Source: Rebecca billardiae RCC1528
Taxonomy: Eukaryota; Protista; Haptophyta
NCBI GenBank assembly: GCA_965240325.2
Contig: OZ251222.1
Coordinates: forward strand, 4,154,001-4,218,000
Length of the DNA: 64,000 nucleotides
Direction of reading: 5' to 3'
Numbering within the stretch: the first letter of the stretch is position 1; each line of letters opens with the position of its first letter. The notes below the pieces were generated by a model, which searched no databases, was not told the origin of the DNA, and worked only from the letters and a program-made list of their open reading frames with translations. The translations under genes and the position numbers were made by a program. Positions 2,285 through 64,000 of the stretch are shown one piece after another.

Positions 2285-2356
2285 GTAATACTTAGTTACC
2301 GCCCTCCCCGCAAGTGTCGGCGGGCTGACGGCTCCCAACCGACACACAGCCGCGGC

Positions 2357-2515
2357 ATGCTCATGAGCACGGTGGACGGCGTGCAGCCGGGCAGCGTGGT
2401 GGTGCTGTCCGGGCTGACGGCGCGCGCCGAGCTGAACGGCGTGCGGGCGCGCGTCGTCTCCTTCGACGCGCCGAGCCGCCGCTACCGCGTCGAGCTGCTC
2501 GGCGCTGCCGCCGGT

Positions 2516-2549
<34 letters not shown>

Positions 2550-14977: not shown

Positions 14978-15173
14978 GGTCGATGTCGTCGTGCGCGAGG
15001 ATCGGAGGATGACGCGATCGAGCGCGCTATTTCATCGACCGGCTGCCGCTCGCCAGGCTTCAGGTTGAAAGCGCCGGTCCGGACTTGGACGGCGGCGAAC
15101 TCCGGGAGCACCGAGCACTGGCTCCCCGGCGCGAGTTTTTCCTCGCGCCGGAGATCCGATTCATCAGCAACCG

Positions 15174-21305: not shown

Positions 21306-21387
21306 CGCGCAGTGGCGGCAGGCCTCTTTGCCGGCACACAAGCTCGTCTGCACCGGACACCGCGCCGACAAGGCCCGCCCGCGCGGG

Positions 21388-22845
21388 ATGCTCGCGCGCG
21401 CCGGAGCGCTGCAGCTGGCGGACATGCCGCCGGAGGTCGTCGAGCGCATCGTGACGGCACTACCTCTGCGTGACCTCGTGCACGCCAACGCCACGGCGCG
21501 CGTCTTCCGCGGCGCGCCGGGGGGGCGCTCACCGGTCGAGCACGCGCTGCGCGAGCGCGCGCGCCGGCGCGGGCACGCGCGCGCGCTGCCGGCGGCGCTG
21601 CCGAGCGGTGTGCGCACGTGGGCCGAGGAACTTCTTGGTCGCGAACGTGTGCACGAGCTCGCGTGCGCGCACGCGTGCACGGTGGCGTGCTGCGATGCGT
21701 TCAGCGCGTTTGTGGACGCGCATGGAGGGCTGCACACGTGCGGCGAGGAGGAGTCGTGGGCGGAGGAGGCGGAGGAGACGATGTACGCCCCATGCGACGC
21801 GATGGGCCACCCGGGCGTGCCGGAGGTGCTCGTGCCCACACGTGTCGCGTCGCTCTCCGCGGTGCGCGTGTGCGCGGTTGCTGCCGGCAGCCACCACCTG
21901 CTCGCGCTGAGCGACGCCGGCGCGGTGCACGCGTGCGGCTGCAACGGAGTCGGCCAGCTCGGACTGGGAGACGGCGGGCTCCGCAGGTCGTTCGCGCGCG
22001 TGCGCGCACTGGCGGGCGAGACGGTCGTGTGCGTCGCGTCGGGCACCGCGCACAGCCTCGCGCTCACGGCAGCTGGGTGCGTGTACAGCTGGGGCCACAA
22101 CGACAGCGGCCAGCTCGGCCACGACGACACGGAGACGCGCTGGGAGCCGCGCCGCATCGAGGGGCTGCGCGGCGTGCGCCTGGCGGGCGTGTCGGGCGGG
22201 GAGGAGCACACGCTGCTGCTCTCGACGAGCGGCGGCGTCTTCTCGTGCGGCTGCGGCATCTCAGGCCGGCTCGGCCACGGCGACGAGCACGATCAGCACA
22301 CGCCGAGGCGCATCGAGGCCTTGGCGGCGCTGCACGCCGCTCACGTGAGCGCTGGCCGCGCGCACAGCCTGGTGGTTGACGCCGACGGCCGCGTGTACTC
22401 CTTCGGGGCGGGCGGATGGGGGCGCCTCGGCCACGGCGACGAGACCGTCCAGCCCGTACCCATGCGCATCGAGGCGCTGGCGGGCGTGCACGCCGTGCGT
22501 GCGTGCGCAGGCGCGGGCAGCAGCGTGGTGCTGGGCGGAGACGGCGGCGTGCACGCGTTCGGCGACAACCGCCGCGCCGTGCTCGGTCTGGGCGAGGAGG
22601 AGCTCCACTCCGTTCACCACCTGCCCGCGCGCGTGCTCGCGCTCGCGCACGCGCGCGTGGTGGGCTGCGCGCTCAGCGGCGGCCACGCGCTGTACGTCAC
22701 GGCGGACGGCAGCGCGCACTCATGCGGCGAGCACACCGCCGCGCTCGGCCACGGCATGAGCGCCGTCGACGAGCCGGACAATGTCGAGACGCCCACGTGC
22801 ATCGCGCAGCTCCCGCGCATGCGCGTGGCACCCGTCGAGTTCTGA
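21388..22845 (+). CDS. F-box plus RCC1-repeat (UVR8/HERC-like propeller) protein
   Basis: F-box-like LADMPPEVVERIVTALPLRDL. About 6-7 repeats of the type VAAGSHH.LAL...G.V..WG....GQLGHGD. Confidence 0.88.
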   Translation: MLARAGALQLADMPPEVVERIVTALPLRDLVHANATARVFRGAPGGRSPVEHALRERARRRGHARALPAALPSGVRTWAEELLGRERVHELACAHACTVACCDAFSAFVDAHGGLHTCGEEESWAEEAEETMYAPCDAMGHPGVPEVLVPTRVASLSAVRVCAVAAGSHHLLALSDAGAVHACGCNGVGQLGLGDGGLRRSFARVRALAGETVVCVASGTAHSLALTAAGCVYSWGHNDSGQLGHDDTETRWEPRRIEGLRGVRLAGVSGGEEHTLLLSTSGGVFSCGCGISGRLGHGDEHDQHTPRRIEALAALHAAHVSAGRAHSLVVDADGRVYSFGAGGWGRLGHGDETVQPVPMRIEALAGVHAVRACAGAGSSVVLGGDGGVHAFGDNRRAVLGLGEEELHSVHHLPARVLALAHARVVGCALSGGHALYVTADGSAHSCGEHTAALGHGMSAVDEPDNVETPTCIAQLPRMRVAPVEF

Positions 22846-23274: not shown

Positions 23275-25183
23275 ATGCACAGGCGGCTGCTCGCGCTCCT
23301 GTGCGCGGCGGCGTCCGTATCCATGCGCTGCACGGCACTCCGTCCGCCCCTCCATGGGCGCGCCGTGCCTCGCGGGCGCGCGCTGAGCGCAGAGGTCGTG
23401 CGCAAAGTGCGCGAGGATCACAATGTGAATCTTCGCGTGGCGGCGGCAGCTACTGTGTTCGGGCTTGCGACAGTTTTGGCGCTACCCGAGGTCACGCACG
23501 CGGGCTTTGGCGCGCCAACCGGCGCCGTGACCTCGGCGCCGCCCATGCGGACGCTGACTGCTGACGACATTGCAAAGGTGTCCAGCCGCAAGCTGCAGCA
23601 GATCAGCGGCTCGAACGCGCCGACCACGGGCACCATCGACAGCCTACTCAACGAGCTACAGCTGCGCGCGGACCAGCTCACCGAGCTCGCGGACGAGGTG
23701 ACGGGGCGCCAGGGTGCGTCCACCGAAGCATCCGGCCTGAGCCTCGAGGACACGATCAAGGCGATCCGCGAGCAGCAACAGAAGGTGTACGCTGACCTCG
23801 AGCGCGGCCGCGAGCTCAAGCAGCAGCTCGAGGTGCGCAAGGAGGTGACGGCCAAGCTGGAGAAGCAGCCGACGTGGTACAACTACGCGGCGGCGCTCTG
23901 CGGGTCGATCTTGTCAACGCTCATCATGCACCCGATGGACACCGTGCGCGCCCCGTCCCCATGCGTCGTCGCGCCTCCGCAGCGACACGCGCGCACTCGC
24001 TCACCCCCCCCCCCCCCCGCCCCCCCCGCCCTCTCCCACGCCCGCGCTCTCCCGGGCATCGGCGCAGATCAAGACGCGCTACATGGCCGCGAGCCCGCGT
24101 TCCGAAGCCGAGCGCTCGGTGGAAGACCTGTACTCGCCGCCGCCGGTCGAGCCCAAGGTGGTGAAGCGCCAAAAGCAGTGGGGCTCACGCGTCGTCGAGG
24201 GGCTCGAGGGGCTGCGCGCCGCAGGCGGCGCGGAGGACGCGGCGGCGGGCGCGGCGCTCGGCGTGGCTGCATCGGAGACCGCTGCGGCCGAGCACAGCGA
24301 GCACGCCGAGCACGCCGAGCACGCCGAGCACGGGGAGCAGGCCGCCGCGAATGCGGACGCGGAGGGCGGCGCCGAGCTCGAGGCGGCCGTGGCCGGGGGC
24401 GAGTACGTCGACTACTCGCTGCAGGTCGAGGTGTACGAGGACGTGCTCGAGCCGTACGACCTCAAGGCGGTGCGCAAGCCGAGCGGCATCGCCTCGCTGT
24501 ACGAGGGCCTCCTCGGCAACATCCTCAAGGAGGGCCCGTCCTCCGCGCTCTACCTCGGCGTGTACGAGGACGTGAAGGTGAAGCTGCTCACCACCACGCT
24601 CGCCGCGCACCCGCTCGGCGTGTACTTGCTGGCGGGCGCGACGGGCGAGCTGATTGGCTCGCTGGTGCGCGCGCCGATGGAGGCGATCAAGTCCAACGTG
24701 CAGTCGGGCACCGACACGTCCACGTTCGCCGCCTCGCGCCGCGTGCTCCTGACGAGCGACGGGCGGGAGAACGTCGTGCGCGCGTGGTCGTGCTCGATCT
24801 GGCGCGACGTGCCGTTTGGCGCCATCCAGCTCGCTGTCTTTGAGCTGACCAAGACGTTCATCCTCAACTCGCGCGACATCTCGATCGACATCAACTCGTT
24901 GCAGGCCGAGGCGATGCTCGGCGCGTTCGCCGGCTCGGTCGGCGCCTTCGTCAGCACGCCCGCCGACGTGATCACCACGCGCATCATCACGCAGAAGCTG
25001 GAGGAGGGCGAGCGCCCAGACGGCATCCTCGAGATGGTGCAGCGCGTGTACGACGAGGGCGGCCCCAGCGCCTTCTTTGTCGGGTGGAAGGAGCGCGTGC
25101 TCTACTGGGCGCCGGCGATCTCGCTCTTCCTCTCGTGCTACTGCAGCGTGCGCCAGCTCGGCTTCAACTACTTCACGGACTGA
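23275..25183 (+). CDS. Mitochondrial carrier family (SLC25; SAMC/MFL1-like) protein with probable plastid presequence; intron 23944..24067
   Basis: Splicing restores signature 1, PMDT|IKTR. Signatures 2 and 3 are PMEAIKSN and PADVITTR. WRDVPFGAIQ present. N-terminal signal peptide plus transit-like region. Confidence 0.87.
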
Positions 25184-38108: not shown

Positions 38109-39499
38109 GCTTCAATCGCTTGCTGAGCCAAGCAGTCAGCAGTACTTGTGCACCCGGTGAACTGAGTAAACGAATGTACGGTATCCTTCGCCTGCCTTAC
38201 GGGTATTTGTTCATCAAGGAAGGGAGTATTACGTATTCACAATGGCGCTGCGCGTCAACTTAGGCTGGAAACCTGTTTCTAAACGCACGATGGCACGCCG
38301 GGCCGGTGGCCCGAGCTCGGAATTCCGACGCTCGGCCATGGGCGCCACAGGGGCGCCGCGGCGGGGCTGACGACGCGCGCGCGTGTGCACGTCTGGGCAC
38401 GGAGTGCGCGCTGCAATGACTGTCCCGTCTGCAGCACCACGCCCCGCGCTGTGAGTGAGAGTGTGGCCCGCGCCCAAGCGAAACGCCGGACGGGCGGCAC
38501 TCCGCCGACCTTGCCGTCCGCCGACCAACCCGCGGCCGCCTGCTGCAGCTCGTGGAAGGCACGCAGTCGCGCGCTCGCGCGTGGATGGCGGCCCTGCGCG
38601 TATGCGCCCGCCGCGCGTGCCGCTTCATCCGCTGGCACCGCACGCGAGGGCGCTCGTCGCGCGCAGTCGGCAGCTCGAGCCCTCCGCCGCCCGACCGGGC
38701 CGGCGCCACACCTCGCGCTCGTGCTCGAGCTGAGAGCCCGCCGCGCGCCCCGCGTTGCTCGCTGGCGCCGCACGCGAGCCGTTCGTCGCGCGACCGACCG
38801 CAAGGACGAGGGCGACCCTCGCCGTCGGGCTCGTGGGCTCTCGCTCTCTGTCGGCTTCGGACCCGGGACGCCGAGGCCGCGCGAGGTTGCTCCGACGCTC
38901 GTATGTCAAATGCAAGATGATACCCGCGTGCCAATATCAGCGCGCCCTTTCGCTCGTGAAATGTCTAGCGAGAAAGTGACGGTTCGTGTGAATGTGAAGT
39001 GTGAACTCGCGACACGACGAATGGGCCGATGCGATTCGCGCGAATGTGAGTATGCAAAGCGCCGAACGACGAGCGGCTTTTGACCGAACGACGAGCGGTT
39101 TTTGTCCTATCGAGCGCGTAAGTGGGTACGCGAATTGCGTTTATGTGATCCGGCACCCGGTGACCAAGGGGGCGCGTCAAAAAAAGGCCTGCGACGGGCT
39201 GGTCCCCAGCGTGAGAAGTCGTGCCTTTGTTCTCGTGGGTTTCCGCCAGAAATATCTGATGACATGAATTAACGACGTGGTATATCTGATGATATCTGAT
39301 GACATTAATACGTTGAATGAACTTGAAAGTGCGACATCAGTAGCGCGGTACCTCCCAATTGACGAAACGGCAACGGTATCACTATCTCCGCTTTGTGAGC
39401 GAGAACGCGCCGGATAAGACTCGCTGCATCTTTCGCAACGTCGACTTGACGAACATGCCGCGCCTGCCAAGGGCGGGGGCAGGCCAGCACGGAGTCCGC

Positions 39500-42400
39500 A
39501 TGAGGGTCGCCCTCGCCTTGCTGGGCGTGCTCGTGCGCGCGGGCGCGCTCGATCCGCGAGCATGCCCCGCGGGCGGGCCGTGGACCAACGTGATCTACTC
39601 GGCCGGGGCGAACGACTCTGTTTCCGTGCGCTCCGACGCCATGCCCGCGCTGCCTCCGAGCGCGACGAGCGTGTGGCATTGTGGCGCGCCGGCGTGCGCG
39701 GAGGGCGAAGCGGCGGACGGCTTCGACGGCACGATCGTCCTCGCGGGGCCCTCGTCGCTGCACCCCGACGACATCCACTGGGCCGTCTCCAGCACGATGC
39801 GGCGCGCGGCCGTGCTCTTCCTCGAGTGGCTGCACACGGAGCGCGGTGGCGTGCGCGTCGGGGGCGCGCGGTTCACGATGTGCGCGTACTGGGTGGGCGA
39901 CGGCTCCTCCACGACGCAGGTGGCGAACGCGACGGCGCACGCCCTGCGCCACGCGCGCGCCGACTTTGCGCTCGCCGGCTACGCGTCGTCGCGCACGCTG
40001 CACGCGGCGCGGCAGGCGCACGCGGACGGCGTGCTGATGCTCACCGCCGGGAGCGCGGCGACGCACGTGCACGCGCAGTCGAACCTGACGTTCGGGCTGC
40101 TGCGGGCGGGCGAGGTCTGGTCGCGCCTCGCCGCCGACACCATCATGGCGCGCGCGAGGGAGATCGACGCGAGCGGCGACACGAGCAGCCGGTGCGCGGC
40201 GCCTTTGTGCGCGCGGAGCCTGCACGCGGCGGTCGTGCGCGAGGGATGCGACGCGCCGCCGGAGGCGACGGCGCCGATCGACTCGGAGACGGCGTGGGAG
40301 GCGGCGAACTTCACCGTGTACGGCGGCGGCTCGCCCGGCGCCCGCCCGCTCTTCCAGCTCTGCGCGGGCATGTCGGTCTCCGACGCGGTGTCGCTGCTCG
40401 AGCCGATGCGCGCGGCCGGCGTGAACGTGCTGGTGGCGCTCGTGTACAGCCAGGTGGCGGAGGTGCTGGTGCGCGCGCTGGCGGCGATGGAGTGGACGCC
40501 GTACGCGGTGTACGTCGCGCCGGGCAGCTCCGCGGCGTGGCACGACGGCCGCGCCGCCGGCGGCAGCGCGCTCGCCGAGCTGTACGCGCTGCGCTCCGCC
40601 GCGTGGTCGGCCGCGCTGCGCACGCGCGGCCAGGTGTCCAACCTGACCTCGCACGAGTTCGTCGCGCGGTACGAGGCGCGCTGGCCGGGCGAGAGCCCGG
40701 ACTACCGCGGCGCGGCGCAGTTCGCCGCGCTCTGCGCGCTCGTCCACGCCATCGAGGCCGCCGGCTCCCTCGACACCGCCGCGGTCGTGCGCGCGCTCCG
40801 CGGCCTGCGTCTGACCGAGTTCTACTCGCTCATCCAGTTCGACGCCAACGGTCAGAACGACGGCGGGCTGGTGCTGGAGCAGCTGCAGCAGGGCGGCGTG
40901 GTGGAGGTGGTCGCGCCGGCGCAGGGCGCGTCGGCGCCGCTCGTCTTCCCCGCGCCCACCCTCGCGCGCCGCGCGTGCGAGGCGCGCACCTCGCCGCCGT
41001 GCAGCGCTCGCGGCGCGTGCGACGACGCGGGTGCGTGCGCGTGCGGCGCGGGCTGGCACGGCGCGGACTGCGAGCGGGCTGGCCTCGGCGGCGGCGGCGG
41101 GGCGGGCGGCGAGGGTGACGCCGCGGAGGACGGCACCGCCGCCGGCACCACCACCGTCGTGACCAGCCCCCGCGACGAGCCGCTGCCCGCCATGCTGAGC
41201 GGCAGCGTGCTGATCGCCGTGCTGCTCTCGACGTGCGCGCTGTGCGTGTGCGCGTGCGCGCTGCTGCTGCACACGCGCCGCACGCTCGCCGCGCTGCGCC
41301 AGGAGGTGTCGAGCTACCGGCGCGAGGCGGCGGATCCGCCGGTGCCGCTGCTCGTGATCTCGGACGCGGGCGAGGACCTCGACGACGAGATGGCGCTCAT
41401 CATGCTCCGCTTCCTGCAGGACGAGCGGCTGGTCGAGCTGCGCGGCGTCGTCGCCAACCTGACGCCCGAGTACGAGCGCGCGCGGCTGATCCGAGGCACG
41501 CTCGACCTGCTCGGGCTGCCCAACGTGCCGGTGGGCGTGGGCACGGACGGCGGGAGCGCGACGCACGGCGCGGGCTTCCTCGACTCCGCGCCGTACGCCA
41601 CCGAGTCCCACTCCGAGCGCATCCACGCGCTCGAGCCCGGGCGCGCGCTGCTGCACCGCGCGCTGAGCGCCGCGCCGCCCAAGTCGGTCACGCTGCTGTG
41701 CATCTCGTCGCTCAAGGACGCGGCGCTCTTCCTGCGGGACAACGGGCGGCTGTGCGCGGAGCGGCTGGAGCGCGTGGTGGTGATGGGCGGCGTGGACACC
41801 GACGCGAGCGCGAGCGCGGGCGCGCTCGTCCCCGACTCGGCGCACAACAACGTCTTCGACTCGGACGCGGCCACGTACTGCCTGCGCGCGTGCGTGTCCC
41901 TCCACATCCCGCTCACGGTCGTGACGAGGCACGCGGCGTACGCGGTGCCGGTGCGGCGGGAGATCTACGACGAGATCGCGCAGTCGGGCAGCCCGATCGG
42001 CTGGCGGCTGCGCAAGGCGCAGCGCGACTCGATCGAGGATCTGTGGCGCCGCTGCTGCGCGCCCGACGGCTCGGCCGAGCGGCGCGGGCTGCCCGCGCGC
42101 TGCGACCGCCAATGGTTCGCAACCACCTTCTGCGCGGGGCGCGGGCGCGAGCGCTCGGCGGACGACCCGATCTGGGACCTGGTGGTGTCGTTCAACCTGT
42201 ACGACGTGGTCGCGCTGCTCGCGGCCGTGCCCGCCGTCGCCGCCTTCCTCTTCAACGCGGACACGCGCGCGCTCGGCGTGCGCAGCCGCAGCTCGGGCGA
42301 GGTGACGGTTACGTCCGCGGTTACGTCCGCGGTTACGTCCGCGCCCGAGCGGCCGGCGCAGTGCTCGCGCGCCGACAGCTCCGCCAGCCTCGGCGGCGGC

Positions 42401-43427
42401 GGCGGGGGCAGCGGGCGCTCCGAGGAGTCGGCGAGCCTCGAGCTCATCGGGCGCTCGGCGGAGGACACGGGCGTGCGCGACGAGGCCGCGCTCCGCGCCT
42501 TCCTGCACGCGGGCATTGCGCGCGGCATCGGGCTCGGCCGCGCGGCCGCGTGGCGCGAGCCGCTGCTGCTCGTGCTGCGGGAGCGCGCGGGCGAGCCGCC
42601 GCCGCCCGCGCTGGCGGCGACGCTGCTGTGCGTGCGCGCGCTGATCGAGTTCAACGCGGTGCTGTGCGCGGCCGTGGTCATCGTGCGCGAGCCCGGCACC
42701 GCCGCCGCCGCCGAGCCCGCCGCGCCGCGCGCGCACGGCGCCGCGGCGGACGCGGCGCAGGCCGCGCGCGCGCGCGCCGCGCTCGACCTTGCAGGCCTGG
42801 TCGCCGCCATCGGCATCAAGGCGGCCGTCGGGCCGATCGTGCTGGAGGAGGTGGCGGAGGAGGCGGAGGGGTGCGACGCGGAGGGCATGGAGCGCTCGGT
42901 CTCCGCCGTCCGCCGCGCCTTCGACGAGTCCCCGCCCGAGGCCCTCCGCGTCGTCCTCCCGACCGGCTGCCCGTGGGCGCTTGCGCACTTTGCGCGCGTG
43001 CACGCCAAGCTGTTCCGCGAGCGCACGGCGCAGGTGCTCGGGCTGGGCGAGTGGAGCGCGGAGGCGGAGGGCGACGCGGCGGGGCCGGGCGCGGCCGACG
43101 GGCTGCCGCTCACGCCCCCGAGCCCCGCCGCGCCGTGCACCATCGAGCCGCCGCCCACGTGCCCCGGGCGCGCGGCGTGCGAGCGCGCGGGCGCGGCGCT
43201 CGCGACGCGCTGCGTGCAGCTAGGGGTGCCGTTGCTCGTCGCGCCGGCGGCGCTCGTGCGCGCGTGCGCGATGCCGCGCGCGGTGTACGACGCGCTGCCG
43301 AGCGTGGCGGGCGAGTTCGGCGCGTCGCTGCTCCGCTCGACGCGCGCGTACGTCGAGCGCGCCGTCGAGGCCGCGCCCGCGCCCGCGGCCGACGCGGCAG
43401 CGGCCGACGCGGCCGACGCGGCAGCGC

Positions 43428-43458
<31 letters not shown>

Positions 43459-44833
43459 TCAGCTGCCGCCCGAGCGCGCGTGGGCCGAGGCGGAGTTTGG
43501 GCTCGAGCCCGAGCCCGAGCGGCAGGGCGGCGGGGCGGCGGGCGTGTGGTCGCGCGTGGCGCGCGTCCCCGCCGCCGGCCCCGTCCTCGTCCTCGCGGTC
43601 GTGCAGTCACGCGCCGAGCGGCCGCTGCTCTGCGAGGGACAGACCTGCCAGCTGCGCGGCGCGACGCACCGCTGCCTCGACGAGATGGGCTCGGTGGAGG
43701 CGGACGGCGCGGGCGACGGCACCGTGGGCGCGCTGGCGCACCTGCTGCTCAAGGCGGCGTCGCTCTCCGCGGTCGGCTCGCTCGCGGCCGCACCGCTCCC
43801 CTCGCGCCGACCGGCGCGCGCCTCCTCGCGCTTCCCCCGCCGCTCCAGCCCAGGCACGCCGGCCGGCGCCGTCCGGTTCGAGCTGGGCGGCGGCGGGCTC
43901 GCGAGCGGCGGCGGCGGTGCCGGGCAGGGCGACAGCGTCGGCATCATCTGCGAGGGCGTGGGCTGGGTGAGCCTGGCCGACGCCGTGCCCGAGTGGCTGG
44001 GCCACGGCGCGCCCGCACACCCGAGTGCCGCCCAGCACGCCGACGAGCCGCCCGCCGCGCAGCAGCGCACGAGCCAGCAGCGCAGCTCGACGCGCACCAA
44101 CTCGACCGCCACCTCCTCCTCGTTCGCGCGCGCCAAGGACGGCGCGCTGCGCCGAGCGCGCACCCTCTCGCTCGCGGCGGCGGAGGCGGTGTCCACGACG
44201 GATTCCTCGAGCTTCCGCCGGCCCGCGCGCCGCTCGCGCAACCCGACCTCGGGCGCGTTCGCCTCGGGCGTCTTCGCCTCGGGCCTGGTGAGCACGCTGC
44301 GCCGCGGCTCTGCCGGCAGGGAGCACGCGAGCGTCGGCGCGGGCGCGCCGCCCGAGCGCCGCAGCGCCGCGCGCCAGAGCGCGCAGGCAGCGGGCGGCGG
44401 CGGCTTCGCAAAGCCGAGGCGCGGCTCCGAGGCCGCGCGCGCGCGCAGGCACGAGCAGCTGCGGCGCGACGCCGAGTGCGCCAAGGTGGACGCCCTGCTC
44501 GAGGACGCGCGCAGCGCCGGCGGCCGCGCGTCCGGCGGCCCGCAGCAGCCGCGCCGCTCTCGCACGCCTTCCTTCTCGCAGGGCTCCGGCCGCGCCCGCG
44601 TCAACCCGCTCACCTTCACGCCCAGCACGAGCGCGCGCCGCATGGCCAACCGCAACACGTCGCTGCGCGTGAATCCCGGCGGGCTCGGCTCGCTGCTGGC
44701 CAACCTGCGCGACGAGGACGAGGGCGATGAGCGCGCGGAGGAGGACGACTCCGACGGCGACGAGGACGGCGCCGACGGCCCGACGGACATCGTCCGAGCG
44801 GTGGGCACGCCAGACGGCGTCGGGCCTGGGTAG
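39500..44833 (+). CDS. Single-pass receptor-like protein: Venus-flytrap (type I periplasmic-binding) domain, EGF, TM, XopQ/HopQ1-like nucleoside hydrolase domain, degenerate second copy, disordered tail
   Basis: Signal peptide MRVALALLGVLVRAGA. VFT motifs ADFALAGYAS, FVARYEARWPGESPDYRGA, AIEAAGSLD..AV..AL and FYSLIQFDANGQN. EGF CSARGAC....CAC..GWHGADCE. TM at ~41192..41270. Hydrolase motifs LLVISDAGEDLDDEMAL, VVVMGG, AHNN.FD..AA and FNLYD. Confidence 0.82.
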
Positions 44834-44986
44834 CTAGCGCGGTGCGCTGAGCTGTGAGTGACGATGACAACGGTGACGATGCGCTGCTACTGCTGCGCGA
44901 TTCCATAATATCCGTGCATGTCGCCCAGGCGGCCGCGGTTCAGATCGTGCCTCGTGGTCCCGCGGTCATCATCGGCGTCAGAGTCG

Positions 44987-53442: not shown

Positions 53443-56400
53443 TCGGCGGCGTCGGCCGCGCTGCGCACGCGCGCGCGCGCGTCCGCGCGCGCGCACACGT
53501 TCACGCCGCCGAGCGAGCAGCCGACGACGCCCGGCTGGTCGGGCGCGAGCACGCCGGCGCGCACGCCGACGACGTCGCCCGGCCGGATCGGCGCGTCCGC
53601 GTGCGCCGCCGCGACGAGCGTGCGCGCGCCCGCCCACACGCAGCGCACGGCCGCGTCCGCGTGCGCGCGCGCGCCGCGCAGCCTCGATAGCGTGTGTCCG
53701 TCCAGCAACGCGCCGCACTCGAACACGCCGCCGGAGACGAGCGGCTGGGTGCGGTGCGCGCCGCGCGGGTCGAGCTCGAGCGCGAGCGTCGCGCGGTCCG
53801 CGCTCAGCGTCGCGCTGAGCAGCGCCAGCGGCCACGCGCCGCCCGCCTCGTCGAAGACGAAGGAGGGAGCGCCGGTGCTGTTGGCCGCGCTGCCGTTCGC
53901 CCAGCTGCCGCTGGCGGGGGCGTACACGGCGTCGATGCCGTTGAGCGCCAGCCCCACGCGCACGCCGCGCTCCGCGCCCGCGCGCAGCGCCTCGCACACC
54001 GCCATCGTGCCGTTGAGGAAGAGCGGCGCGCCCGCCCCTCCCGCCGGGCCGTAGCCGCCAAAGACACACACCGCCGCGCCGCCGCCGCCGCCGCTGCCGT
54101 TGCGCGCGGCGCCGGTGCCGTTGGCGCCGCTGCCCGAGCCCGGCTGGAGGAGCAGCGCGTCGAAGCCCGTGCCGCGCAGCGTGACGCGCGTGCCCGGCGC
54201 GCCGTGCGCGGGGTACACCTCCTCGATCGACGGCTGCGCGTACAGCGCCAGCGGCAAGGCGGCGGACGCCGAGGCTTCGGCTTCGGCAGAGGCGCGCGCG
54301 GCGGGCGCGCTGCCGGCTGGCACGAGCCGCACGCTGCCCACGCCGGCCTGCGCGGCGGGGGGCGCGTCGCAGGCGAAGTGGCCGTCGGCGGGGCTGCCCA
54401 CCGGGCGCGCGGGCGTGCGCACCTCCGCGCCCACGCCCGGCAGCCCGAACGCGCACTCGAGCAGCTCCCACGCGCCCGCGCCGCCGTCGGCCGCGGCGAG
54501 CGCGCGCCCGAGCTCGCTCGCGCGCAGCGCGAGCGCGGTGCCGCCCGCGCCGAGCGGCGCGCCCGCCGGCTCGGGCGGCGCGTCGAGGTCGGTGAGGCGC
54601 GCGCCGTCGGGCACGAGCGTGATGCTCGAGGGCGCGCAGCAGAAGAGCGCCTCGAGCTCGTCCAGCCCGGAGCCCTCGAGCGCGAGCGAGACGCGCACCG
54701 TCGCGCCGCGCACCGCGCTCGCGTTGGCGTGCGCGCCCGCGGCGGCGGCGGCGGCGCCGAGGCCGAGCGCGGCCGCGGGCGGCGCCTCGCACGTCGCGGA
54801 CGCGCCGTCGGGCGCGACGCGCGCGGGCGCGCGCGCGAGCAGCGCGCCGCCCTCCGCGGCGCGGAAGCGGCACTCCGCGCCGCCCAGGTCCGCGAGGCCC
54901 GCGCCGTGCACCGTCAGGTTGGACCCGCCGCCCGCGCCGCTCACGCGCGGCGCCACGCGCGCCACGCTGGCCACGTATTGCGTGAAGGGCGCGGCCGTGC
55001 CGACGGGCGCGCCGGCGGCGTCGAGCAGCGGCAGCGGCAGCGCGAAGCCCGCGCCGCCGCCGTCGGCCGCGCGCCACGGCGCGAGGTCGAGCAGCGAGAG
55101 CGCGCGCACGAGCGGCGGCTGCGAGCCCGCCGCGCCGAGCGCCTCCGGCGCGGCCGGCACGTCGCACGCGCACGCGCCGTCCGCGCCGAGCGAGCCGTCG
55201 GCGCCGGCGCCGAGGTCGGCGGCCGCCTCGTGCGGCGCGCGCGCGCGCGCGGGCACGAGCACGCCGTCGAAGGCGCACGCGAGCGCCGCGCAGTCCTCGA
55301 GGTTCGCGCCGCGCACGAGCAGCACGCCGCCGCCCTCGGCGGGCGCCGAGAGCGGGCGCACGCTCGTGAGACTGAGCGCGGGCGGGCTGGGCGGCGGCGG
55401 TGCGGGCGAGGGCACGGGGCGGCACCACGCGGTCGTCGGGCAGGCGGTCGTGGGCTTGCGCACCTTCGCCTGGCCGATGATGCGCGAGAGCTGCACCGTC
55501 GAGTCGAGCGCGCCGCCCGTCGCGGTGAGCGCGTCGAGCTGCGCGACCGCGAGAGCTGAGCGTGCCGCCTCCTCGTCGTCCGCGCCGCCGCCGCCGCCGC
55601 CTCCGCCGTCGCTCGTCGCGTTGGTGCCGTTGAGGTGCGCGGTGGCGTTGGTGGCGTTGGAGGTGGCGTTGGACGGCGGCGAGGGCGGCGGCGCGCCCGG
55701 CCCCGCCGCGTTGTACGCCGCGAAGATGCTCGCGAGCGCGGGCAGCACGTCCTCCTCCGAGTGCTGCTGCGCCGCGTTGATGCGCGACACCACCTCGGCG
55801 GCCGCGCTCACGTTCTGCACGAGCAGAGACTCGGACTCGGCGGCGGAGACGGCGGCGGCGGAGGCGCGCATCGTCGCGGCGACGGCGCGCGAGAGCGAGG
55901 GCATCGTCGCCGCGGGCGCCGGCGACGCGAGCCGCGCGTTCGCCGAGGCGACGATCGCGCCCACCGCCGTCTCGTTGCCAAAGTCGAGCGAGCAGCTCGC
56001 GCCGGTCGCGTTGCGCCGCACGTTGGCCTCGACCAGGTCTGCGATGTGCGCGGCGAGCGCGCGCTGCACGGCGAGCGCGGACTCGCGCATGCGGTCGGGG
56101 GAGGCGGTGGCGAGCGCGCTCGCGGAGCTGTAGCTCGCCTTCACGCCCGCGACGAGCGTGGTGAGCGAGTGCAGCGTCGACGCCTTGCTCAGCAGCCGCG
56201 CGTGCGCCGCGCCGACGTCGCCGCCAAACCACGCGGGCGGGATCGGGTCTTCGGAGAGCAGCGTGGCCGGGTCGAATCCGAGGCACTCGCCCACGACGGT
56301 GGGCGCGACCTCGTCGACGGTGGCGGCGGCGTCGGAGACGGCGAAGCCGACCCGCTTGATCTGCGGCGGCGTGAGCCCGCGCGACGCGATCGCCTCGATC

Positions 56401-56739
56401 GTGTCCTGCACCACCGTCGTCACGGACGAGATGGTGGACGAGCCGAACGGCGCGCGCAGCGGGATGCGCACGCGGAAGCCCGTGTCCGAGTCGACGCACG
56501 CCGTGTCCGCGTCGGTGGTGGCGATGGTGTACGGGCGCCGGCCGTACCGCGCGTCGAAGTTGAACTGCGCGAACGAGCCCACCGCGTCGGTGAGCGCGCT
56601 CGGCTCCTCGCCCGCGTCGAAGAGCCCGTCGCCGTCCAGGTCGACAAAGACGGTGCAGCCGCGCAGGTAGCCGTCGTACGCGTGGCCGACCGGGAGCGGC
56701 GGCGGCGAGGGCGGCGGCGTGGGCGGCGGCGAGGGCGAG

Positions 56740-56780
<41 letters not shown>

Positions 56781-59700
56781 GAAGGGCAGGGTGCGCGGCG
56801 GCGGCGGCGGCAGCGGCGGCGGCGCGGGCGGCGGCGAGGGCGGCGGCGAGGGCGGCGGCGAGGGCGGCGGCGCGGGCGGCGGCGCGGGCGGCGGCGAGGG
56901 CGGCGGAGACGGCGGCGGCGCGGGCGGCGGCGGGCTCGGCGGCGGCGAGGGCGGCGGCGCGGGCGGCGGCGGGCTCGGCGGCGGGCTCGGCGGCGCGCTC
57001 GGCGGCGGAGACGGCGGAGGTGCCGGCGGCGGGCTCGGCGGCGGCGCCGGCGGCGGGCTCGGCGGCGGCGCCGGCGGTGGGCTCGGCGGCGGCGCCGGCG
57101 GCGGGCGAGGCGAAGTCGGCGGGCTCGGCGGCGGGCTCGGCGGCGGCGCAGGCGGCGGGCTCGGCGGCGGCGTCGGCGGCGGGCTCGGCGGCGGCGCGGG
57201 CGGCGGCGGCGGCGAGGGCGGCGGCGCTGGTGGCGGGCTCGCCGGCGGCGGCGAGGGTGGTGGCGAGGGCGGCGGCGAGGGCGGCGGCGCGGGCGGCGCG
57301 GGCGGCGGGAACGGCAGTGCGCGAGGCGGCGGTGGGGGGAGCGGCGGCGGGGTCGGCGGCGGCGGCAACGGAGGTGGAGATGGCGGCGGGCTCGGCGGCG
57401 GGCTCGGCGGCGGGCTCGGCGGCGGGCTCGGCGGCGGGCTCGGCGGCGGGCTTGGCGGCGGCGCTGGCGGCGGTGACGGAGGCGGCGCTGGCGGCGGCGA
57501 CGGCGGTGGGCTTGGCGGCGGAGATGGCGGCGGCGTAGGCAGCGGCGGCGGCGGGCTGGGCGGTGGGCTGGGCGGCGGGGACGGCGGCGGCGCTGGCGGC
57601 GGGCTTGGCGGCGGCGACGGCGGTGGGGATGGAGGCGGGCTTGGCGGCGGCGAGGGCGGAGGGCTGGGCGGCGGAGATGGCGGCGGCGCAGGCAGCGGCG
57701 GCGGCGGGCTGGGCGGCGGGCTGGGCGGCGGGGACGGCGGCGGAGCAGGCTGCGGGCTCGGCGGCGGGCTCGGCGGCGGGCTCGGTGGCGGCGCTGGCGG
57801 CGGTGAGGGCGGTGGGCTGGGAGGCGGCGCTGGCGGCGGCGCTGGCGGCGGCGGGCTCGGCGGCGGGCTCGGCGGCGGGCTCGGTGGCGGCGACGGCGGC
57901 GGCGACGGCGGTGGGCTCGGCGGCGGCGACGGCGGCGGCGACGGCGGCGGCGACGGCGGCGGACTCGGCGGTGGCGACGGTGGCGGAGACGGTGGAGGCG
58001 CCGGTGGCGGGGAAGGCGGCGGCGGCGACGGCGGCGGGCTGGGCGGCGGGCTGGGTGGCGGGCTGGGCGGCGGGCTGGGCGGCGGCGCCGGCGGTGGAAA
58101 TGGAGGTGGCGATGGCGGCGGCGCCGGCGGGGGGCTCGGCGGAGGGGACGGCGGCGGCGCGGGCGATGGCGCAGGCGGCGGCGATGGCGGCGGCGATGGC
58201 GGCGGCGAGGGCGGCGGGCTCGGCGGTGGCGAGGGCGGCGGCGCTGGCGGGGGCGGCGATGGTGGTGGCGCGGGCGGCGGCGGGCTCGGCGGCGGCGAGG
58301 GCGGCGGGAACGGCGGCGGGCTCGGCGGCGGGCTCGGCGGCGGGCTTGGCGGCGGGCTCGGCGGCGGGCTCGGCGGCGGGCTCGGCGGCGGGCTCGGCGG
58401 CAGGCCCGGCGGCGGGCTCGGCGGCGGGCTCGGCGGCAGGCCCGGCGGCGGGCTCGGCGGCGGGCTCGGCGGTGGGCTCGGCGGCGGGCTCGGCGGCAGG
58501 CCCGGCGGCGGGCTCGGCGGCGGGCTCGGCGGCGGGGCCGGTGGCGACGGCGGCGGGAACGGCTCCGCGCGCGGCGGCGGCGGCGGTGCGGGCGGTGGCG
58601 AGGGCGGTGGTGACGGAGGCGGCCAGGGCGGCGGCGAGGGCGGCGGCGCGGGCGGTGGCTGCGTCGGCGGCGGCGAGGGTGGCGGCATCGGCGGCGGCGA
58701 GGGTGGCGGCACGGGCGGCGGCGCTGGGGGCGGCGAGGGCGGTGGGACCGGAGGTGGCGGGCTCGGAGGCGGCGACGGCGGCGGCGACGGCGGGGGTGAT
58801 GGCGGTGGAGGGCTCGGCGGAGGCGAGGGCGGCGGGCTCGGCGGCGGGCTCGGAGGCGGCAACGGCGGCGGGCTTGGCGGCGGCCGCGGCAGTGGTGGCG
58901 GTGGGCTCGGCGGCGGCGAGGGAGGCGGCGAGGGCGGCGGGGCCGGGGGGACGGCGGGCGGAGGGCTGGGCGGCGGGGATGGCGGCGGACTGGGCGGAAG
59001 GCTGGGCGGCGGGCTGGGAGGCGGCGAGGGCGGTGGTTGTGGCGGCGGCACCGGCGGCGGGCTCGGTGGATGAGTGGGCGGTGGGCTCGGTGGCGGGCTT
59101 GGCGGTGGGGCCGGCGGCGAGGGCGGCGGGAAGGGCTGCGTGCGAGGCGGCGGCGGCGGGGCCGGCGGCGGTGACGGTGGCGGTGACGGTGGCGGCGAGG
59201 GCGGCGGTGAGGGCGGCGGCAGCGGCGGCGGCGGGCTCGGTGGCGGAAACGGCGGTGGCGCAGGCGGTGGCGCAGGTGGCGGCGAGGGCGGTGGCATTGG
59301 GGGCGGCGGGCTGGGCGGAAGCGACGGTGGCGGGCTCGGCGGCGGCATCGGCGGAGGCGCCGGCGGCGGGGTCGGCGGTAACACCGGAGGCGGCGAGGGT
59401 GGAGGGCTAGGGGGCGGGCTCGGCTGCGGCGCCTCTGGCGGCGGGCTTGGCGGTGGCGACGGCGGCGGCAGCGGTGGTAGGCTGGGCGGTGGCGATGGGG
59501 GCGGCGACGGTGGTGGCTGTGGCAGCGGCGGCGGCGGGCTCGGCGGCGGGCTCGGCGGCGGCGCCGGCGCCGGCGATGGCGGCAGCGATGGTGGTGGGCT
59601 TGGTGGCTGCGACGGAGGCGGGCTCGGTGGCGGGCTCGGTGGCGGGCTTGGTGGCAGACTCGGTGGCGGCGATGGCGGCGGCGCGGGCGGTGAGGGCGGC

Positions 59701-62700
59701 GGGAACGGCTCCGTCCGAGGCGGCGGCGGCGGAAGCGGCGGCGGCGAGGGCGGCGGAGACGGCGGCGGCGAGGGCGGCGGCACCGGAGGCGGGCTTGGCG
59801 GCGGTGGGCTCGGCGGCGGCGATGGCGGCGGTGACGGCGGCAACGAGGGCGGCGGTGACGGCGGAGGGATCGGCGGCGGCCGAGGCAGAGGCGGCGGCGG
59901 GCTGGGTGGGGGCGATGGCGGTGGCGATGGCGGCGGTGCGGGCGGCGGCGACGGCGGCGGCGATGGCGGCGGCGACGGCGGCGGGGAAGGCGGCGGGGAC
60001 GGCGGCGGCGACGGTGGTGAGGGCGGCGGGAACGGCTCCGTCCGAGGCGGCGGCGGCGGAAGCGGCGGCGGCGACGGCGGCGGCGACGGCGGCGGCGACG
60101 GTGGCGGTGCCGGAGGCGGACTCGGAGGCGGAGGGCTCGGAGGTGGCGATGGCGGAGGCACCGGTGGCAGCACCGGTGGCGGCGATGGCGGCGGGCTTGG
60201 TGGCGGGGATGGCTGCGCACCCGATGGCGGCGGGCTCGGTGGCGGCGAGGGCGGCGGCGCAGGCGGCAGGCTCGGCGGTGGCGATGGCGGCGGTGATGGC
60301 GGTGGCTGTGGCAGTGGCGGCGGCGGGCTTGGAGGTGGGCTCGGGGGCGGAGACGGCGGCGGTGATGGCGGAGGCGAGGGCGGTGGCGACGGCGGCGGCG
60401 ACGGCGGCGGCGACGGCGGGGAGGGCGGCGGGAACGGCTCCGTCCGAGGCGGCGGCGGCGGAAGCGGCGGCGGCGACGGCGGCGGCGACGGCGGCGGCGA
60501 CGGTGGCGGTGCCGGAGGCGGACTCGGAGGCGGAGGGCTCGGAGGTGGCGATGGCGGAGGCACCGGTGGCAGCACCGGTGGCGGCGATGGCGGCGGGCTT
60601 GGTGGCGGGGATGGCTGCACACCCGATGGCGGCGGGCTCGGTGGCGGCGAGGGCGGTGGTGCAGGCGGCAGGCTCGGTGGTGGCGATGGCGGTGGCTGTG
60701 GCAGCGGCGGCGGCGGGCTCGGTGGCGGGCTCGGTGGCGGTGAAGGCGGCGGCGATGGCGGCGGCGACGGTGGCGCCGACGGCGGCGGCGACGGTGGAGG
60801 CGCCGGCGGCGGGGAAGGCGGTGGAGACGGCGGCGGCGACGGTGGTGAGGGCGGCGGGAACGGCTCGGTCCGAGGCGGCGGCGGTGGAAGTGGCGGCGGC
60901 GACGGCGGCGGCGACGGCGGCGGCGACGGTGGAGGTGCCGGAGGCGGACTCGGAGGCGGAGGGCTCGGAGGTGGCGATGGCGGAGGCACCGGTGGCAGCA
61001 CCGGTGGAGGCGATGGCGGCGGGCTTGGTGGCGGGGATGGCTGCGCACCCGATGGCGGCGGGCTCGGTGGCGGCGAGGGCGGCGGCGCAGGCGGCAGGCT
61101 CGGTGGTGGCGATGGCGGCGGTGATGGCGGTGGCTGTGGCAGTGGCGGCGGCGGGCTTGGAGGTGGGCTCGGGGGCGGAGACGGCGGCGGTGATGGCGGA
61201 GGCGAGGGCGGTGGCGACGGCGGCGGGGACGGCGGCGGCGACGGCGGGAAGGGCGGCGGGAACGGCTCCGTCCGAGGCGGCGGCGGCGGAAGCGGCGGCG
61301 GAGACGGCGGCGGCGACGGCGGCGGCGACGGTGGCGGTGCCGGAGGCGGACTCGGAGGCGGAGGGCTCGGAGGTGGCGATGGCGGAGGCACCGGTGGCAG
61401 CACCGGTGGCGGCGATGGCGGCGGGCTTGGTGGCGGGGATGGCTGCGCACCCGATGGCGGCGGGCTCGGTGGCGGCGAGGGCGGCGGCGCAGGCGGCAGG
61501 CTCGGTGGTGGCGATGGCGGCGGTGATGGCGGTGGCTGTGGCAGTGGCGGCGGCGGGCTTGGAGGTGGGCTCGGGGGCGGAGACGGCGGCGGTGATGGCG
61601 GAGGCGAGGGCGGTGGCGACGGCGGCGGGGACGGCGGCGGCGACGGCGGTGAGGGCGGCGGGAACGGCTCCGTCCGAGGCGGCGGCGGCGGAAGCGGCGG
61701 CGGAGACGGCGGCGGCGACGGCGGCGGCGACGGTGGCGGTGCCGGAGGCGGACTCGGAGGCGGAGGGCTCGGAGGTGGCGATGGCGGAGGCACCGGTGGC
61801 AGCACCGGTGGCGGCGATGGCGGCGGGCTTGGTGGCGGGGATGGCTGCGCACCCGATGGCGGCGGGCTCGGTGGCGGCGAGGGCGGCGGCGCAGGCGGCA
61901 GGCTCGGTGGTGGCGATGGCGGCGGTGATGGCGGTGGCTGTGGCAGTGGCGGCGGCGGGCTCGGTGGCGGGCTCGGTGGCGGTGAAGGCGGCGGCGATGG
62001 CGGCGGCGACGGTGGCGGCGACGGCGGCGGCGACGGTGGAGGCGCCGGCGGCGGGGAAGGCGGTGGAGACGGCGGCGGCGACGGTGGTGAGGGCGGCGGG
62101 AACGGCTCCGTCCGAGGCGGCGGCGGTGGAAGTGGCGGCGGCGACGGCGGCGGCGACGGCGGCGGCGACGGTGGCGATGCCGGAGGCGGACTCGGAGGCG
62201 GAGGGCTCGGAGGTGGCGATGGCGGAGGCACCGGTGGCAGCACCGGTGGCGGCGATGGCGGCGGGCTTGGTGGCGGGGATGGCTGCGCACCCGATGGCGG
62301 CGGGCTCGGTGGCGGCGAGGGCGGCGGCGCAGGCGGCAGGCTCGGTGGTGGCGATGGCGGCGGTGATGGCGGTGGCTGTGGCAGTGGCGGCGGCGGGCTT
62401 GGAGGTGGGCTCGGGGGCGGAGACGGCGGCGGTGATGGCGGAGGCGAGGGCGGTGGCGACGGCGGCGGGGACGGCGGCGGCGACGGCGGGGAGGGCGGCG
62501 GGAACGGCTCCGTCCGAGGCGGCGGCGGCGGAAGCGGCGGCGGCGACGGCGGCGGAGACGGCGGCGGCGACGGTGGCGGTGCCGGAGGCGGACTCGGAGG
62601 CGGAGGGCTCGGAGGTGGCGATGGCGGAGGCACCGGTGGCAGCACCGGTGGCGGCGATGGCGGCGGGCTTGGTGGCGGGGATGGCTGCGCACCCGATGGC

Positions 62701-64000
62701 GGCGGGCTCGGTGGCGGCGAGGGCGGCGGCGCAGGCGGCAGGCTCGGTGGTGGCGATGGCGGCGGTGATGGCGGTGGCTGTGGCAGTGGCGGCGGCGGGC
62801 TTGGAGGTGGGCTCGGGGGCGGAGACGGCGGCGGTGATGGCGGAGGCGAGGGCGGTGGCGACGGCGGCGGGGACGGCGGCGGCGACGGCGGGGAGGGCGG
62901 CGGGAACGGCTCCGTCCGAGGCGGCGGCGGCGGAAGCGGCGGCGGAGACGGCGGCGGCGACGGCGGCGGCGACGGTGGCGGTGCCGGAGGCGGACTCGGA
63001 GGCGGAGGGCTCGGAGGTGGCGATGGCGGAGGCACCGGTGGCAGCACCGGTGGCGGCGATGGCGGCGGGCTTGGTGGCGGGGATGGCTGCACACCCGATG
63101 GCGGCGGGCTCGGTGGCGGCGAGGGCGGTGGCGCAGGCGGCAGGCTCGGTGGTGGCGATGGCGGTGGCTGTGGCAGCGGCGGCGGCGGGCTCGGTGGCGG
63201 GCTCGGTGGCGGTGAAGGCGGCGGCGATGGCGGCGGCGACGGTGGCGCCGACGGCGGCGGCGACGGTGGAGGCGCCGGCGGCGGGGAAGGCGGTGGAGAC
63301 GGCGGCGGCGACGGTGGTGAGGGCGGCGGGAACGGCTCGGTCCGAGGCGGCGGCGGTGGAAGTGGCGGCGGCGACGGCGGCGGCGACGGCGGCGGTGATG
63401 GTGGCGGTGCCGGAGGCGGACTCGGAGGCGGAGGGCTCGGAGGTGGCGATGGCGGAGGCACTGGTGGCAGCGCCGGTGGAGGCGATGGCGGCGGGCTTGG
63501 TGGCGGGGATGGCTGCGCACCCGATGGCGGCGGGCTCGGTGGCGGCGAGGGCGGCGGCGCAGGCGGCAGGCTCGGTGGTGGCGATGGCGGCGGTGATGGC
63601 GGTGGCTGTGGCAGTGGCGGCGGCGGGCTTGGAGGTGGGCTCGGGGGCGGAGACGGCGGCGGTGATGGCGGAGGCGAGGGCGGTGGCGACGGCGGCGGCG
63701 ACGGCGGCGGCGACGGCGGGGAGGGCGGCGGGAACGGCTCCGTCCGAGGCGGCGGCGGCGGAAGCGGCGGCGGCGACGGCGGCGGCGACGGCGGCGGCGA
63801 CGGTGGCGGTGCCGGAGGCGGACTCGGAGGCGGAGGGCTCGGAGGTGGCGATGGCGGAGGCACCGGTGGCAGCACCGGTGGCGGCGATGGCGGCGGGCTT
63901 GGTGGCGGGGATGGCTGCGCACCCGATGGCGGCGGGCTCGGTGGCGGCGAGGGCGGTGGCGCAGGCGGCAGGCTCGGTGGTGGCGATGGCGGTGGCTGTG
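48441..64000 (-). CDS. Giant surface protein (>5100 aa, 5'-partial): extensin-like Ser-Pro stalk, DxDxDG module, IPT/TIG repeats, REJ/PKD-like region, TM, RS-rich tail
   Basis: Uninterrupted frame to the window edge. Contains SPPP repeats, DGYLRGCTVFVDLDGDG, IPT starts (LTSVRP..GG..LLVRGANL and PSIEEVYP.HG..GT.VTLRGTGF), and REJ-like LDARASFDP...FAWAC, LAPGASYAF, PPPLGG and DLPLHYAF. Hydrophobic helices lie near 49440..49110. Confidence 0.8.
56695..64000 (-). repeat. Coding Pro/Ser tandem array; regular 402-bp (134-aa) units with 426/438-bp variants from ~60000 onward
   Basis: The RTEPF anchor (aacggctc) occurs at 60031, 60433, 60859, 61261, 61663, 62101, 62503, 62905, 63331 and 63733. Confidence 0.92.

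Follow-up and report, generated by a model that had tools for sequence, protein, structure and literature searches.

A single-exon haptophyte gene encoding a putative Venus flytrap receptor with a XopQ/HopQ1-like cytosolic domain

The 64,000-nt stretch of DNA analysed here (positions 4,154,001 to 4,218,000 of contig OZ251222.1, assembly GCA_965240325.2; the whole stretch is hereafter called the window) comes from the GC-rich genome of the haptophyte alga Rebecca billardiae RCC1528 and carries a 5.3 kb gene whose product is a single-pass membrane protein of type I, the closest named relative of which is a protein of the haptophyte Diacronema lutheri. We are almost certain of the overall architecture of this protein, which comprises a signal peptide, an ectodomain assigned to the Venus flytrap (VFT) fold, an EGF-like module, one transmembrane (TM) helix, a domain placed in the XopQ/HopQ1 branch of the nucleoside hydrolase (NH) superfamily (NH1), a second, degenerate domain of the same kind (NH2) and a disordered tail. 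In an earlier note on the locus, made from the sequence letters, the protein had been put forward as a candidate for a new class of receptor enzymes.

An open reading frame (ORF) scan of the window gives a + strand frame that extends uninterrupted from 39359 up to its stop codon at 44831-44833. Counted from the ATG at 39500, the coding sequence (39500..44833, +) specifies 1777 amino acids followed by the stop. In-frame ATGs are present at both 39455 and 39500, which makes an N-terminal extension of 15 codons possible (39455..39499, +), and a signal-peptide-like N-terminus results from either start. The GC content is 67-80% in the gene region and 59-85% across the window, and because in such DNA either strand can carry long ORFs by chance, codon periodicity was used as the test of coding. 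The GC content of third codon positions (GC3), taken in the frame of the ORF, is 0.91-1.00 in 18 out of 18 consecutive 300-nt segments from 39500 to 44899, as compared to 0.55-0.63 immediately upstream of the ORF and 0.58 downstream. The values remain at 0.91-0.96 in the last part of the ORF, and thus the tail is coding as well. Since the high GC3 is continuous in one frame and has sharp edges, the whole 5.3 kb can be taken as one coding exon; the gene is intact, in one exon and one frame, and two of its paralogs have also been called as single exons (see below). The earlier note had described a single ORF of 1777 residues, which the open frame and the continuous periodicity bear out. All the motifs quoted there are found in the translation, and the coordinates that it gave for the VFT domain and the EGF-like module hold as well, as does its placing of one TM helix followed by an NH domain, which begins at approximately 41312.

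A 1232-aa antisense ORF that overlaps the receptor gene is a chance product of the GC-rich DNA. Two antisense ORFs lying inside the gene (39979-40701 and 41314-41964, both on the - strand) have a GC3 of 0.99, a value that probably reflects the extreme GC3 of the sense strand and not the presence of antisense genes. Approximately 200 nt upstream of the start codon, an AT-richer stretch contains three copies of a ATATCTGATGA-like motif (39253-39310), which may be a promoter element or an element of the untranslated region.

Domain composition of the protein

The signal peptide (residues 1-16; 39500..39547, +) has a hydrophobic core, with a 10-residue hydrophobicity maximum of 3.1 beginning at residue 3, and the residues A-G-A precede the likely cut. 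The ectodomain that follows is assigned to the VFT, or type I periplasmic binding protein (PBP), fold of the leucine/isoleucine/valine (LIV)-binding protein type (residues ~58-487; 39671..40960, +) by its homologs and its modelled structure and not by a direct Pfam match, as the Pfam scan of the whole protein returned no PBP family at E <= 1. When 5.8 billion proteins were searched, the only sequence relatives of the ectodomain were branched-chain-amino-acid-type binding proteins. The best of them (P0153) is 25% identical over 91% of the ectodomain (E 7e-16), and the relatives carry the families Peripla_BP_6 (PF13458; 13/13 proteins) and ANF_receptor (PF01094; all but one). The matches to PDB sequences are weak and are again LIV-binding proteins. 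The AlphaFold2 (AF2) model of the ectodomain, built on its relatives, has a mean predicted local distance difference test score (pLDDT) of 65 and a predicted template modelling score (pTM) of 0.68, with the lobes at 80-97. Compared with known structures using Foldseek, this model matched the LIV-type binding protein 8wch_A (E 2e-15; template modelling score, TMt, 0.66) and also the ectodomain of the GABA-B receptor (E 9e-12). The top 50 matches consist of LIV-type binding proteins, AmiC, UrtA and GABA-B, with E values of 2e-15 to 1e-11 for the best of them, TMt of 0.6-0.71 for the chains that are ectodomain only, and structural identities of 14-18%. Both the Peripla_BP_6/ANF_receptor relatives and the structural matches agree with the VFT domain proposed in the earlier note. 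In addition, five of the nine ectodomain asparagines are located in N-x-S/T sequons, as compared to 1.08 expected, a number reached by 0.2% of shuffled sequences; the same comparison revealed no sequon enrichment in the cytosolic part.

Between the VFT domain and the membrane there are two short segments. Residues 493-526 (40976..41077, +) contain six cysteines in EGF-like spacing, and this EGF-like module comes near the Pfam thresholds (EGF_Teneurin 22.4 bits, cut-off 24.3; EGF_2 17.3 bits, cut-off 22.1); the AF2 model is of low confidence there. It is followed by a Gly/Ala/Thr-rich stalk of low complexity (residues 527-569; 41078..41206, +; pLDDT <50). The single TM helix (residues 570-588; 41207..41263, +) has a 19-residue Kyte-Doolittle mean of 2.73, is the only strong hydrophobic segment besides the signal peptide, and is followed by a basic stop-transfer stretch. 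On the cytosolic side, a short helix runs directly into NH1.

The first cytosolic domain, NH1 (residues 605-925; 41312..42274, +), belongs by motif, sequence and modelled fold to the NH superfamily and, within it, to the branch of XopQ and the HopQ1-like proteins (HLPs). It scores 43.9 bits against the Pfam family IU_nuc_hydro (PF01156; cut-off 34.2; residues 622-834) and E 1e-47 against the XopQ model of NCBIfam (NF041355, an equivalog model). In a phmmer search of the PDB, XopQ chains are matched over the whole domain at E 3e-34, and classical NHs, among them the weakly matching enzymes of Leishmania and Crithidia, at 2e-5 or weaker. The AF2 model covering residues 595-1510, for which 75 sequences were used (pLDDT 80, pTM 0.79; NH1 itself 93-98), places XopQ first as well: in Foldseek, XopQ chain 4p5f_A is matched with E 1.5e-19 and TMt 0.85, and the classical NHs among the matches listed have E values of 1.7e-8 or weaker and TMt of 0.71 at most. 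This model has 108 PDB matches at E <= 0.001, and the best 50 of the 108 are all of the NH fold. The earlier note had assigned the domain to the XopQ/HopQ1 branch and not to the classical NHs, which is what phmmer, NCBIfam and Foldseek all indicate.

Instead of the canonical N-terminal DXDXXXDD, NH1 has the cluster DAGEDLDD (residues 622-629; 41363..41386, +), a non-canonical Ca2+/ribose motif of the form DXXXDXDD, which begins 34 residues past the TM helix. The motif DXXXDXDD was found in 127 of the 155 NH copies of the relatives, and the variant has been defined as that of the HLP branch (PMC6019455). Conservation among 75 relatives reaches 90% or more at 36 positions. NH1 keeps the family residue at 35 of these, and on the grounds of these residues and of the modelled fold it is predicted to be catalytically competent. 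It is not an ortholog of XopQ: its score stays below the equivalog level, and it belongs to a eukaryotic membrane protein that has a signal peptide and a TM helix of its own. None of the PADLOC profiles matched NH1 or NH2, and a search of BFVD gave only distant nucleoside hydrolases of giant viruses.

The approximately 850 residues after NH1, which the earlier note had left unassigned, contain a second NH-like domain. A disordered Ser/Gly-rich linker (residues 926-978; 42275..42433, +; 25% Ser, pLDDT 36-46) leads to NH2 (residues 979-1424; 42434..43771, +), which is recognised only through profile comparison and fold; NH2 has no match in the PDB by sequence, and single-sequence searches miss it. 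Aligned by hhalign, an NH2 profile made from four family members matches the NH1 family with a probability of 99.2% (E 2.9e-19, 296 columns), and the AF2 model of NH2 has a pLDDT of mostly 85-95. NH2 is 32-34% identical to the matching region of the relative P0154 (see below). No more than 11 of the 36 conserved positions are retained in NH2, and all the motif aspartates as well as the equivalents of N783, D787 and Y901/D902 have been replaced, for which reason NH2 is regarded as a pseudo-enzyme domain, degenerate and predicted to be inactive. Tandem-NH relatives are usually built in a similar way, with one copy having DXXXDXDD and the other lacking it. The intact and the degenerate NH domain would add a new case to those in which a pseudo-enzyme is paired with an active paralog.

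The protein ends with a tail (residues 1425-1777; 43772..44830, +) that is disordered, rich in Ser, Arg and Ala and acidic at its end, as delimited by composition and by a pLDDT of <50. Within it, a short conserved motif (residues 1482-1500; 43943..43999, +) was recognised from BLASTP segments common to two relatives, P0154 and P0002. The tail has three R-[RK]-x-[ST] sites as compared to 1.05 expected; three are reached by 7.7% of shuffles, and the surplus of basophilic-kinase sites is therefore not significant.

Relatives and genomic surroundings

An exhaustive search with NH1 retrieved 1302 representative proteins, of which 294 have E values below 1e-30. The named relatives come from one haptophyte, one diatom and one dinoflagellate, and many relatives are MMETSP or EukProt transcripts; the best ones, which are from data on these three groups, are 40-67% identical to NH1. 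Most NH relatives are soluble, and many of the algal members have tandem NH domains. Of 78 assessable proteins, counting the query, 9 have a TM-like segment directly before the NH domain, the closest relatives of the query among them.

Three of the relatives are particularly informative on the composition of the family. The first is a 1559-aa MMETSP transcript (P0154), which encodes an OpuAC-type binding domain, a TM helix, NH1 and NH2, and is 64% identical to the query over the TM helix and NH1. This transcript spans the ectodomain, the TM helix and both NH domains, and in one relative, therefore, these fused parts are transcribed together. The second, the hypothetical protein KFE25_002800 of Diacronema lutheri (P0002; 2408 aa), has a PBP_like_2 domain in front of the TM helix, NH1 and NH2; it is 48% identical to the query over the TM helix and NH1, and both NH2 and the C-terminal motif can be recognised in it. 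A paralog with the same core is present in GenBank without annotation. P0154 and P0002 are relatives of the query at the level of paralogs, not orthologs. The third relative (P0001; 2341 aa) has Laminin_G_3 and cadherin-like domains, a TM helix and NH1. The gene calls for P0002 and P0001 each consist of a single exon, 7227 and 7026 nt long, respectively. In the query and all three relatives the distance from the TM helix to the Asp motif is 27-37 residues. Relatives thus carry different ectodomains, namely a phosphate-type PBP, OpuAC, or LamG with cadherin-like modules, on a kept TM-NH1-NH2 core, and a constant core under exchangeable ectodomains is a pattern which, as judged from sequence, fits a modular sensor family.

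In a word-based search with the full-length protein, only five long relatives were retrieved and none of them had the VFT domain in common with the query. A metagenome scan with the protein alone gave no close relative, and the scan with an alignment gave 64 loci carrying NH relatives, with a TM segment next to the NH domain in 0/64. In one metagenomic contig (L040:1-7437) the open frame covers no fewer than 2479 aa, of which approximately 2090 lie upstream of its NH domain. Other proteins have fusions of the NH domain to cyclase-STAND-TPR, protein kinase, NUDIX, sulfotransferase and TerB domains; the fusions in P0094, P0106, P0120 and members of the alignment include adenylate/guanylate cyclase together with AAA_16/NACHT and TPR. 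These domain combinations suggest that the XopQ-like NH domain is a general module of signalling or conflict systems.

On both sides of the receptor gene there are class 3 lipase genes (PF01764; 35715-38105, +, and 45260-47785, -). A recent inverted duplication around the receptor gene was considered and ruled out, the two flanking Lipase_3 genes showing no BLASTP similarity beyond chance. An exact-product look-up gave no entry for the upstream one. Further upstream in the window are a MYND/ankyrin gene (2039-5410), an ABCD-type half transporter (12836-15031, -), a HlyIII/PAQR protein (19161-22292, -) and a mitochondrial carrier (23849-25180). These ordinary eukaryotic genes confirm the nuclear context. 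At the far end of the window (56000-64000) the GC skew jumps to +0.28 and then to +0.40, and the GC content is 81-85%. A repeat at 59939-63992, consisting of approximately 10 copies of a 402-bp unit at 87% match with GGC/GAC-rich sub-repeats, lies inside a high-GC3 ORF (59411-64000, +; >1529 aa) which runs off the window. No Pfam family matched the translation of this ORF, and it probably encodes a Gly/Asp-rich repetitive protein.

Proposed function and alternative readings

Known receptor enzymes make or remove their signals by means of kinases, phosphatases and cyclases. Here, the explanation that best accounts for the whole protein, and to which we give about an even chance, is that the VFT domain is a sensor controlling hydrolysis by NH1. 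The flytrap would close on a small solute, probably an amino-acid-like one, and the rigid EGF-like module, followed by the TM helix, would pass the closure on to NH1. Since the catalytic loop begins only 34 residues past the membrane, the signal could change either the activity of NH1 or its pairing with the pseudo-enzyme NH2, which would act as a built-in regulatory partner.

As for the substrate, NH1 would hydrolyse a ribosyl bond in a small molecule derived from ADP-ribose (ADPR) and not an ordinary nucleoside, a cyclic ADPR isomer such as 2'cADPR being the leading candidate. XopQ has been reported to be a highly efficient enzyme on 2'cADPR, cleaving its O-glycosidic bond to give ADPR, and not to hydrolyse common nucleosides (bioRxiv 10.64898/2026.06.15.732069); haptophytes possess TIR domains in which the catalytic Glu is present (bioRxiv 10.64898/2026.04.20.719644). 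It is from these two reports that an ADPR-derived messenger is proposed. Depending on the cue outside, the receptor would then lower an intracellular nucleotide signal or cease to lower it. That an ADPR-derived messenger is removed under the control of a ligand is, by analogy and by sequence, our tentative proposal for the function, put forward with rather less than even confidence. Whether the protein and its relatives found a class of receptors that act by destroying a cyclic ADP-ribose messenger of the TIR type is doubtful.

Several points weigh against a sensor of this kind. For the gene itself no gene model or transcript was recovered, the transcript support being that of the relative P0154. 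The VFT domain lacks direct Pfam recognition and its AF2 model is moderate (pLDDT 65). NH1 reaches 162.9 bits on NF041355, for which the equivalog cut-off is 500 bits, and its identity to XopQ is approximately 35-40%; for both of these reasons its substrate specificity may differ from that of XopQ. No ortholog with the same VFT-NH combination was found among the 5.8 billion proteins; the layout pointed out in the earlier note is one of a small modular family in which the ectodomains are swapped. There is no TIR gene within the 64-kb window. Finally, the ectodomain may face the lumen of an organelle instead of the outside.

Among the other explanations, a membrane-tethered enzyme without ligand regulation, in which NH1 would be constitutive and the ectodomain would serve nutrient capture, adhesion or sorting, is unlikely. 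The LamG and cadherin-like adhesion modules in the ectodomains of relatives would suit such an enzyme, as would the mostly soluble state of the NH relatives and the lack of a TM segment beside the NH domain in all 64 metagenomic loci. However, swapped solute-binding ectodomains on a constant TM-enzyme core are the usual signature of a sensor family, the spacing between the TM helix and the motif is both short and conserved, and so is the presence of a pseudo-enzyme partner domain.

XopQ was long held to be inactive and was crystallised with bound ADPR, and inactive NH-like modules such as Sde_0182 exist (PMC8910321). NH1 could accordingly be a binding module that senses an ADPR-like molecule, in a protein that is a scaffold or signals via a phosphorylatable tail. 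NH2, which looks clearly non-catalytic, and the three R-[RK]-x-[ST] sites of the tail, whose excess is not significant, are in line with this explanation; it is nevertheless quite unlikely. NH1 has kept its whole Asp cluster and the family residue at all but one of the 36 conserved positions, whereas these have decayed freely in NH2, which argues for selection on chemistry in NH1, and XopQ is now reported as an enzyme of high efficiency.

That NH1 is an ordinary salvage nucleoside hydrolase for purines or pyrimidines, merely anchored to the membrane, is very improbable. Its score above the threshold of IU_nuc_hydro and its weak matches to the Leishmania and Crithidia enzymes would be expected of such a hydrolase, whereas the motif is DXXXDXDD and not the canonical DXDXXXDD, XopQ-type proteins are ahead of classical NHs by approximately 29 orders of magnitude in E and also in structural similarity, and XopQ-type proteins are inactive on common nucleosides. 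It is scarcely credible that the gene is an artefact, either an ORF open by chance because of the high GC content or two adjacent genes taken for one: chance ORFs as long as the 1232-aa antisense one do occur here and an exact-product look-up in a gene-call collection found no entry for the translation from either ATG, but the codon periodicity runs in one frame with sharp edges over 5.3 kb, all segments except the linkers have homologs or a confident fold, the P0154 transcript covers the ectodomain, the TM helix, NH1 and NH2, and two paralogs have been called as single exons.

If the VFT-controlled hydrolysis outlined above were confirmed together with the proposed substrate, the level of an intracellular 2'cADPR-like signal in haptophytes would be governed by extracellular solutes (amino-acid-, phosphate- or betaine-like) or by contacts at the surface, the XopQ-type hydrolase of plant pathogens would have an endogenous counterpart in eukaryotic signalling, and the sensing of nutrients and environment would be wired to the TIR/ADPR pathway. 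Since XopQ is reported to cleave the immune messenger 2'cADPR, an endogenous, receptor-linked relative in algae suggests that messengers derived from ADP-ribose are turned over natively in organisms other than plants and bacteria. The genes, whose ligand-binding ectodomains are diverse and can be recognised, make up a concrete set for tracing ADPR-type signalling.

Comparison with known systems

The type III effectors XopQ, HopQ1 and RipB (PDB 4kl0, 4p5f and 7jlu chain B) form the branch of the NH fold with which NH1 has DXXXDXDD and other sequence blocks in common. They are, however, secreted bacterial proteins, whereas NH1 is the cytosolic part of a eukaryotic membrane protein and is followed by a degenerate copy. 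HLPs have been reported in haptophytes and heterokonts since 2018 (Piechocki et al.; PMC6019455), and the algal HLP clade described in that study includes NH1, the relatives of which come from groups named there. That paper covers the NH-like domain only, and the word 'transmembrane' is absent from its text. A literature search revealed no paper describing a receptor with an NH/XopQ-like output domain, and a XopQ-type hydrolase of the NH fold as the cytosolic part of a receptor is thus undescribed in the literature searched. Consequently, what the earlier note had called a candidate new receptor-enzyme class stands as far as the layout is concerned and not as regards the occurrence of the domain in algae: new is the receptor layout only, the presence of HLPs in an alga being already known.

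The layout has its parallels among better known receptors. In mGluR and CaSR, a VFT domain is joined to the membrane through a cysteine-rich module, and in the query, similarly to class C G-protein-coupled receptors such as GABA-B, the VFT domain is followed by a small cysteine-rich module that leads to the membrane. Class C receptors have seven TM helices as compared to one in the query, and the VFT domain of the query is nearer to bacterial Peripla_BP_6 proteins, of which P0153 is the example given above.

Another parallel in layout, and the one drawn in the earlier note, is to receptor guanylyl cyclases with their arrangement of VFT, TM helix and enzyme. In these receptors, a pseudo-enzyme kinase-homology domain adjoins the active domain, and the receptor-type adenylyl cyclases of trypanosomatids have a comparable layout. 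The single polypeptide described here has the same succession of signal peptide, VFT/LIV-binding-protein-like ectodomain of the ligand-binding type and one TM helix, with the NH domain in the place of the cytosolic nucleotide-signalling enzyme, and the parallel therefore holds. NH2 would correspond to the kinase-homology domain, the order of the active and the pseudo-enzyme domain being different in the two. The cytosolic parts are unrelated in sequence, and while the class III cyclases of receptor guanylyl cyclases make a messenger, the NH-fold hydrolase of the haptophyte protein would degrade one.

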